NCBI GenBank assembly: GCA_950097015.1
Contig: CATNEN010000012.1
Span: 2,666,001-2,730,000 of the forward strand
Direction of reading: 5' to 3'
Source: Macrostomum hystrix
Taxonomy: Eukaryota > Animalia > Platyhelminthes
Length of the DNA stretch: 64,000 nucleotides
The notes under the pieces are model-generated. The model had not been told where the DNA came from and did not search any database. It saw nothing but the letters and a program-made list of their open reading frames with translations. The position numbers and the translations under genes were made by a program. This document shows positions 29,601-30,502 of the stretch, one piece after another (the first letter of the stretch is position 1; each line of letters opens with the position of its first letter).

Positions 29601-30502
29601 CAGCCGAAGCTCTTCAGCCTCGACAGCTTCGGTGGCAGCGTCGTCGAGTATTGCAGCTGCTTTGTCCTCGCGGTCAGCCAGCCGGGACGTCAAGTAGATG
29701 ACGCGCTGCTGCAGCTGTTCGGTGGCCGCGTCCTTCCTGGTGCTGTCAGCTTGCAGTGCGTCAATCTTCTCTGCCAGCGTCTTTAACTCCAGCAGGAGAC
29801 GGTCGTTCGCGTCCGTGACCTGCTGGCTGTCGACTGCCGGCTTGGACTTTGTTTTTATAGCTTTTATTGTTAAGGAAAAGTCACTGATTTAATTTATTAA
29901 ATCACCGCTGATTGCTTCAACCACTAAGGAGCTTCGGACTTCTAACCGTGAGGTCGGGAGTTCGAACCTCAGCCCAAGGGGCTGTGCCACTGGCTGAACT
30001 TTTGGCCCAACTGGGCAATGCGTAATACGTATCCGCCTATTGAGCGCATCCTCTTAAAGTCACAATTCTGTCCATCCTATAGCCTGCACAGGTTAATTAT
30101 TAATCGAAAGTCATAAAAGGATATAGATGGCTGTTCTCCAGTTCTAGCAGGTAGATCTGCTGCTGCAGAGACTTAATGTACTCCTTCTCAAGGGCCGCTG
30201 TTACCGATAGCTCGCCAGATCTTGAATTATTTTCCAATGAACATTTAGACTTGGGCTGACCATTATTTAACAGCAAGTAATTTAATTATTAAGTTTACCT
30301 TGCAGAGAGGTCGCGAGGCTTGAACAAGTCACCTGAGTAGCTGAGCCGTTTGTGTGCGTCTAAAATAACCAATTTTAAACGTTTCTACTATTTTAGTAGA
30401 ATTCAATGTTTAGAAAACAGAAGCAAACCGACCTTGGTCAAGCGCCCGCAGCGATCGCCGCCATTTTCCAACGTCGGGCGACGGATCAGCAACACCGTCC
30501 AT
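26647..30502 (-). CDS. Long coiled-coil protein, 7 exons, 447 aa, family not recognised
   Basis: Exons 30502-30433, 30359-30299, 30220-30125, 29850-29480, 29283-28898, 27535-27263 and 26733-26647 are phase-consistent (1344 nt). The protein runs [38 protein letters not shown]...[19 protein letters not shown]...[13 protein letters not shown]. Intron 3 is AT-AC. Confidence 0.85.
26784..27250. repeat. (GACA)n microsatellite with GGCA interruptions, filling an intron
   Basis: Direct observation. Confidence 0.97.
27690..28765. repeat. Intronic purine-rich GAGATGAGACACG-type array with higher-order duplications
   Basis: Direct observation. Confidence 0.95.
29851..30124 (-). other. U12-type (minor spliceosome) AT-AC intron, 274 nt
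   Basis: 5' splice site CT|ATATCCTTTT at 30124; branch point TTTTCCTTAAC at 29879-29869; 3' end ...TAAAAAC| at 29851. Removing it joins the flanking exons in frame (CT+A = Leu), and there is no usable GT donor nearby. Confidence 0.92.
29925..29980 (+). other. tRNA-derived fragment (Arg-TCT-like 3' half; pseudo-tRNA or SINE head)
   Basis: GGACTTCTAACC anticodon-arm-like segment followed by a B-box/T-loop GGAGTTCGAACCTC. No recognisable D-arm or acceptor stem. Confidence 0.35.

Follow-up and report, generated by a model that had tools for sequence, protein, structure and literature searches.

A U12-type AT-AC intron in a coiled-coil gene of the flatworm Macrostomum hystrix and the minor-spliceosome genes found with it

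That flatworms retain the minor spliceosome is already established. A complete set of minor snRNAs was published for two schistosomes in 2009 (PMC2770079), and all four were published in 2018 for the planarian Schmidtea, in which RT-PCR confirmed a U4atac that had scored under the statistical threshold (PMC6312358); a 2023 pan-eukaryotic survey places Schistosoma among the groups that an earlier study had wrongly scored as lacking minor snRNAs (PMC10639083). Searching the literature, we found no current report of minor-system loss in any flatworm, and likewise none in tapeworms, nor did we find a paper on minor splicing in Macrostomum. An earlier note on the stretch of Macrostomum hystrix DNA analyzed here (64,000 nucleotides, hereafter the window) had described an AT-AC intron and had thought it notable on the ground that several other flatworms were reported to lack the minor system, a view that is not supported by the two snRNA studies or by the survey. 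The intron is instead a well-supported instance of an already known kind. Its position and signals are as follows.

30124..29851, minus strand: U12-type AT-AC intron, 274 nt, phase 2 (sequence, spliced contigs of 4 runs, snRNA pairing)
30116..30124, minus strand: 5′ splice site ATATCCTTT (sequence; ATATCCTT kept at three homologous loci)
29869..29879, minus strand: branch-point sequence TTTTCCTTAAC (sequence and U12 pairing)
29851..29852, minus strand: terminal AC, the preceding 16 nt being A-rich and without a pyrimidine tract
29928..29985, plus strand, antisense to the gene: core of a dispersed tRNA-Arg(TCT)-like repeat, inside the AT-AC intron

When compared with the canonical U12-type AT-AC introns of animals and plants (/ATATCCTTT ... 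TTCCTTRAC ... YAC/; PMC6259924, PMC3584512), this intron has the identical 5′ and branch consensus, matching the AT-AC minor 5′ site at 9/9 positions and, with TTCCTTAAC, the branch site at 9/9. It also shares with them the AT-AC termini, the lack of a pyrimidine tract, a non-zero phase, its occurrence as the only one of its kind in a gene of GT-AG introns, and signs of slower removal. It differs in having A rather than a pyrimidine at position -3, in a more distant branch site (see below), and in a host gene that is outside the known conserved minor-intron genes. The minus strand reads ..GAGAACAGCCATCT|ATATCCTTTTATGAC.. at 30125|30124 and ..GACTTTTCCTTAACAATAAAAGCTATAAAAAC|AAAGTCCAAG.. at 29851|29850, and joining 30125 to 29850 gives the in-frame, phase 2 reading ..LELENSHL|KSKPAVDS..; the 5′ site, branch motif, AC end and in-frame join that the earlier note had described are all present at these minus-strand positions. 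The putative branch adenosine, that of TCCTTAAC, is 29870, at 19 nt from the last intron base, with 18 nt between TTTTCCTTAAC and the junction, and the tail past the branch motif, AATAAAAGCTATAAAAAC, is A-rich with no pyrimidine tract.

Both ATATCCTT and TTCCTTAAC occur only once in the 64-kb window, in this intron. Singly, neither motif is commoner in the real 64 kb than in shuffled sequence, so it is the arrangement of the signals, together with RNA, that makes the case for the AT-AC intron, and motif counts do not. An in-frame stop lies nine codons into the intron, and no GT occurs from the end of the upstream frame up to this stop, leaving no GT-AG alternative to the AT-AC junction. We are highly confident that 30124..29851 is a genuine U12-type AT-AC intron, a predicted substrate of the minor spliceosome in the pre-mRNA of a coiled-coil gene of ~460 codons.

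Two other places in the window carry minor-type motifs. A GTATCCTTTTT motif at 28784-28791 (minus strand), 106 nt into the GT-AG intron 28897-27536, amounts to a cryptic minor-type 5′ site, left unused in the contigs described below. On the plus strand, GTATCCTTTT at 10432 is followed by TCCTTGAC at 13662 and an AG 10 nt further on (~13681), the spacing of a U12-type GT-AG intron; this candidate, 10432-13681, may be due to chance or may be antisense to the adjoining large gene.

The exon structure of the host gene was drawn mainly from public RNA. Four runs, all of one study, matched 28800-30600, with 56-64% of the sampled words present, about the exonic share of the stretch, and their Logan contigs (assembled contigs, run type unrecorded) were aligned to 28780-30700. 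From 5′ to 3′ on the minus strand, the gene consists of the following parts.

31306..31377, minus strand: 5′ UTR exon, at least 72 nt (loose 5′ end of the contigs, matching 31306-31335)
31305-30570, minus strand: GT-AG intron between the 5′ UTR exon and the first coding exon (splice sites in the sequence)
30433..30569, minus strand: first coding exon, ATG at 30541 (contigs; N-terminus like P0001 and P0002)
30432-30360, minus strand: GT-AG intron (contig joint)
30299..30359, minus strand: second coding exon (contigs)
30298-30221, minus strand: GT-AG intron (contig joint)
30125..30220, minus strand: coding exon upstream of the AT-AC intron, ending with 2 nt of a Leu codon (contigs and joints)
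29480..29850, minus strand: coding exon downstream of the AT-AC intron, coiled coil (contigs; 74% identical to P0001)
29479-29284, minus strand: GT-AG intron (contig joint)
28898..29283, minus strand: coding exon (contigs)
28897-27536, minus strand: GT-AG intron (loose 3′ end of the contigs matches 27535 downward)
27263..27535, minus strand: coding exon (loose contig end)
27262-26734, minus strand: predicted GT-AG intron (colinearity with the relatives' proteins)
26647..26733, minus strand: predicted last coding exon, stop 26649-26647 (P0001/P0002 colinearity, outside the aligned contigs)

The seven coding pieces total 1383 nt (461 codons), and six GT-AG introns and the one AT-AC intron interrupt this single-copy gene. 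Runs X3 and X5 show allelic variants at two positions of the 5′ UTR exon, and the 5′ UTR contigs show no spliced-leader sequence. Tandem repeats occupy two of the introns: an array at 27685-28766, with a 16-nt unit inside a 269-nt higher-order unit, lies in intron 28897-27536, and 468 nt of (ACAG)n, which is (CTGT)n on the gene strand, lie at 26783-27250 inside the predicted intron 27262-26734, both arrays giving rise to long spurious ORFs in several frames. Rfam and ARAGORN searches of the window returned no match. The repeat core inside the AT-AC intron is a conserved segment of ~55 nt comprising an anticodon arm with TCT and a T arm; the repeat has at least 40 genome copies with 84-95% identity.

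Similarity searches with the host protein were conducted exon by exon. No Pfam family reached the cut-off with the coiled-coil protein, a word search with exon 4 gave no match, and its Atlas neighbours are generic coiled coils only (HOOK1, myomegalin and GOLGA2). With the downstream exon, an exhaustive HMMER search of 1.84 billion representatives found one relative, P0001, encoded by a 1460-nt transcript contig from another sample and another species, and colinear across the junction (HL|RSKP, against HL|KSKP in the host gene). P0001 as query led to two Macrostomum lignano proteins, an orthologue with 72% identity and a paralogue with 42%, and a profile of the three relatives reached nothing further beyond Macrostomum. 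As far as these sequence searches go, the family is detectable only in Macrostomum. Taken by themselves, the matches put the genome within or beside Macrostomum and outside M. lignano.

Within the family, we found an intron at the identical codon and phase in three further loci: a paralogue in the M. hystrix assembly (L013 on contig C3 of G000, intron 1673-1851, minus strand), which was initially a weak match, the M. lignano orthologue (L019) and the M. lignano paralogue (L020, intron 3854-4214). All three follow the pattern exon|ATATCCTT ... TTCCTTRAC (TTCCTTAAC or TTCCTTGAC) ... AC|exon. The copies measure 274 nt in the host gene, 179 nt in L013, 440 nt in L019 and 361 nt in L020, and their intron interiors are 35-43% alike, that is, unalignable, against 63-86% for the flanking exons; since the U12 signals are kept in interiors that no longer align, they are under selection. 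Judged by this comparison, the signals are older than both the duplication and the species split and have been maintained ever since, a pattern that in such comparisons marks a functional minor intron.

A different history, in which the AT-AC intron was gained recently in this lineage and not inherited, is unlikely. It draws on the lack of detectable relatives outside Macrostomum, owing to which no outgroup shows an ancestral intron, and on the tRNA-derived repeats in the intron bodies. Against this, the intron is older than the duplication, whose copies are now ~42% identical, and older than the split of the two species. Coiled-coil proteins quickly lose detectable similarity, making missing homologues weak evidence for a recent gain, and the repeat inserts differ between the species, which marks them as secondary. 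The orthologous intron of M. lignano contains another tRNA-like insert (L019:3600-3680), in sense orientation; ARAGORN made no tRNA gene call on any of these tRNA-like inserts.

Whole-genome searches for minor snRNAs (G000, 220 Mb, 42 contigs, with Rfam gathering scores as the threshold) gave one match each for U12 (85.7 bits), U11 (70.4 bits) and U6atac (47.5 bits), all above the gathering score. Their recognition motifs are intact in the alignments: the U12 branch-site box GUAAGGAAAAU, the U11 5′ end AAAAAGGG and the U6atac box AAGGAGAGAAG. Predicted pairing with the AT-AC intron amounts to -7.4 kcal/mol for U11, -7.6 for U6atac and -9.2 for U12, the branch site forming a 9-bp helix with the GUAAGGAAAA region of the U12 candidate; for the six GT-AG introns of the gene, the values range from ~0 to -3.8 kcal/mol at the 5′ site and from -3.2 to -6.8 in the 3′ region. 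For U4atac, the genome search found no match at the default threshold. A relaxed threshold gave only one candidate of full model length (L005:1501-1646, minus strand; G000:C34:7129766-7129911), scoring 35.6 bits against an Rfam gathering score of 53. Its first 20 nt form a 17-bp stem II with the U6atac candidate (-31.8 kcal/mol, reached by 0/2000 shuffles), the two co-fold into the expected stem II, 5′ stem-loop and short stem I, and an Sm site, AAUUUUUG, is present. The stem II test was used because the whole-length U4atac-U6atac duplex is uninformative, 179/1000 shuffles being equally good. Another locus, L004, the lone match to the U4atac complementarity pattern, does not fit the U4atac model and was taken as a chance match.

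Of the four snRNAs that the earlier note had named, U11, U12 and U6atac were thus recovered above the Rfam cut-offs, and U4atac only as a sub-threshold candidate. We consider this diverged U4atac candidate plausible, and the Rfam model seems to lack sensitivity for flatworm U4atac. As in Schistosoma mansoni and S. japonicum (PMC2770079) and in Schmidtea mediterranea (PMC6312358), U11, U12, U6atac and (here as a candidate) U4atac are single-copy; in those flatworms and in this genome alike, U4atac and U6atac are diverged yet able to form the duplex, and the Schmidtea U4atac candidate was also under the statistical threshold. Unlike Schistosoma and Schmidtea, the present organism is a macrostomid, and the evidence for it further includes the splicing of a minor intron that is conserved across paralogues. 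Among the proteins, the genome has a homologue of SNRNP25 (U11/U12-25K) with 64.8 bits on PF18036, whose best solved relatives are the mouse and human U11/U12-25K chains. The six-frame, exon-by-exon search, which cannot show absence, gave no match for PDCD7 (PF16021) or CCDC84 (PF14968) and identified no U11-48K. Matches to the zf-U11-48K (CHHC-finger) family were rejected as U11-48K, being rather TRM13-like (L014) or a two-finger GTSF1-like gene (L015/L016).

A few AT-AC introns are spliced by the major, U2-type spliceosome, and these are without the ATATCCTT and TCCTTRAC signals. Termini alone leave the choice of spliceosome undecided, as both kinds share AT-AC, and the branch site of the present intron, whose 19-nt distance to the 3′ site would count as short for a U2-type intron, lies beyond the U12 optimum of 11-13 nt (PMC3584512). 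That the major spliceosome removes this intron is nevertheless very improbable, given that the U12 5′ and branch motifs, which of the two kinds only this intron has, are both perfect and are kept in four loci with fully diverged intron interiors, that a pyrimidine tract is absent, and that the snRNAs encoded in this genome, U11, U6atac and U12, pair with the signals.

If the minor spliceosome acts here by its established pathway, the U11/U12 di-snRNP would bind the ATATCCTTTT 5′ site through the U11 5′ end, and simultaneously GUAAGGAAAA of U12 would pair with the branch site UUUUCCUUAAC, leaving the branch A bulged. The U4atac/U6atac.U5 tri-snRNP would then join, AAGGAGA of U6atac would displace U11 at the 5′ site, and two transesterifications would join 30125 to 29850.

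The join of 30125 to 29850 is found in RNA. In all four runs there are contigs that lack the 274 bases between 29849/29850 and 30124/30125; the joint has one ambiguous base and, shifted by one, corresponds to 29851-30124 with AT..AC on the minus strand, the join of 30125 to 29850 that the earlier note had expected in transcripts. There are four joints in the aligned stretch, three with CT..AC plus-strand ends (GT-AG on the minus strand) and one AT-AC, and the other introns visible in the host-gene contigs are GT-AG in 4/4 cases. A single 1662-nt contig carries all coding exons from 30569 to 28897 and continues into the next exon. The chance that the 274-base junction is an artefact of reverse-transcriptase template switching, contig misassembly or a genomic deletion allele is negligible: although the RNA evidence consists of Logan contigs from one study with the run type unrecorded, the identical junction appears in four runs with just 1 base shared at the joint, the AT-AC join keeps the reading frame, colinearity across it is seen in two annotated M. 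lignano proteins and in a transcript of another species, and four GT-AG joints on the same contigs indicate that these derive from spliced RNA. With exact removal of the AT-AC intron in RNA, the snRNA genes, a plausible U4atac and the SNRNP25 homologue, the functional minor spliceosome that the earlier note had proposed for this organism is supported.

We also found that each of the four runs has an unspliced contig that crosses the AT-AC intron and its exon borders with zero mismatches, and that this is the only intron so represented. These contigs have depths of 3.5-6.3, compared with 8.3-23.2 for those with the spliced AT-AC junction, and contig depth is 0 in bins inside the GT-AG introns. 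Contamination by genomic DNA would cover every intron, so the unspliced contigs point to selective partial retention. The AT-AC intron appears to be partly retained and spliced less completely than its GT-AG neighbours, a difference for which the coarse contig depths are suggestive only. Partial retention is a known habit of minor introns (PMC4066798). A retained AT-AC intron would read HLYPFMTFD and then a stop, ending translation after 9 codons.

A departure from the canonical minor intron is the distance from the branch A to the 3′ splice site: it is 19 nt in the host gene and, in the three homologues, 22, 26 and 36 nt, where the optimum is 11-13 nt (PMC3584512). The values of 26 and 36 nt, unusually large for minor introns, are those of the paralogue copies L013 and L020, and the distance has also drifted from one orthologue to the other. 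The longer tails of the homologous copies show no branch-like motif closer to the 3′ site. We therefore put forward, tentatively, the possibility that Macrostomum minor introns tolerate, or prefer, branch sites unusually distant from the 3′ splice site. If true, the distal branch sites would reflect a relaxed 3′-site measuring rule in the minor spliceosome of this lineage.

With this locus, a macrostomid flatworm now has a minor intron verified in transcripts, and its list of minor snRNA genes is nearly complete. Given that flatworms were known to retain the system, the view of minor-spliceosome evolution is unchanged. Gene finders restricted to GT-AG will break the host gene, which makes the AT-AC intron useful for annotation, and work on minor splicing in this laboratory flatworm genus can use it as a positive control. 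Only two points are of wider interest: the branch sites are distal in all four copies, and the AT-AC intron appears to be selectively retained.
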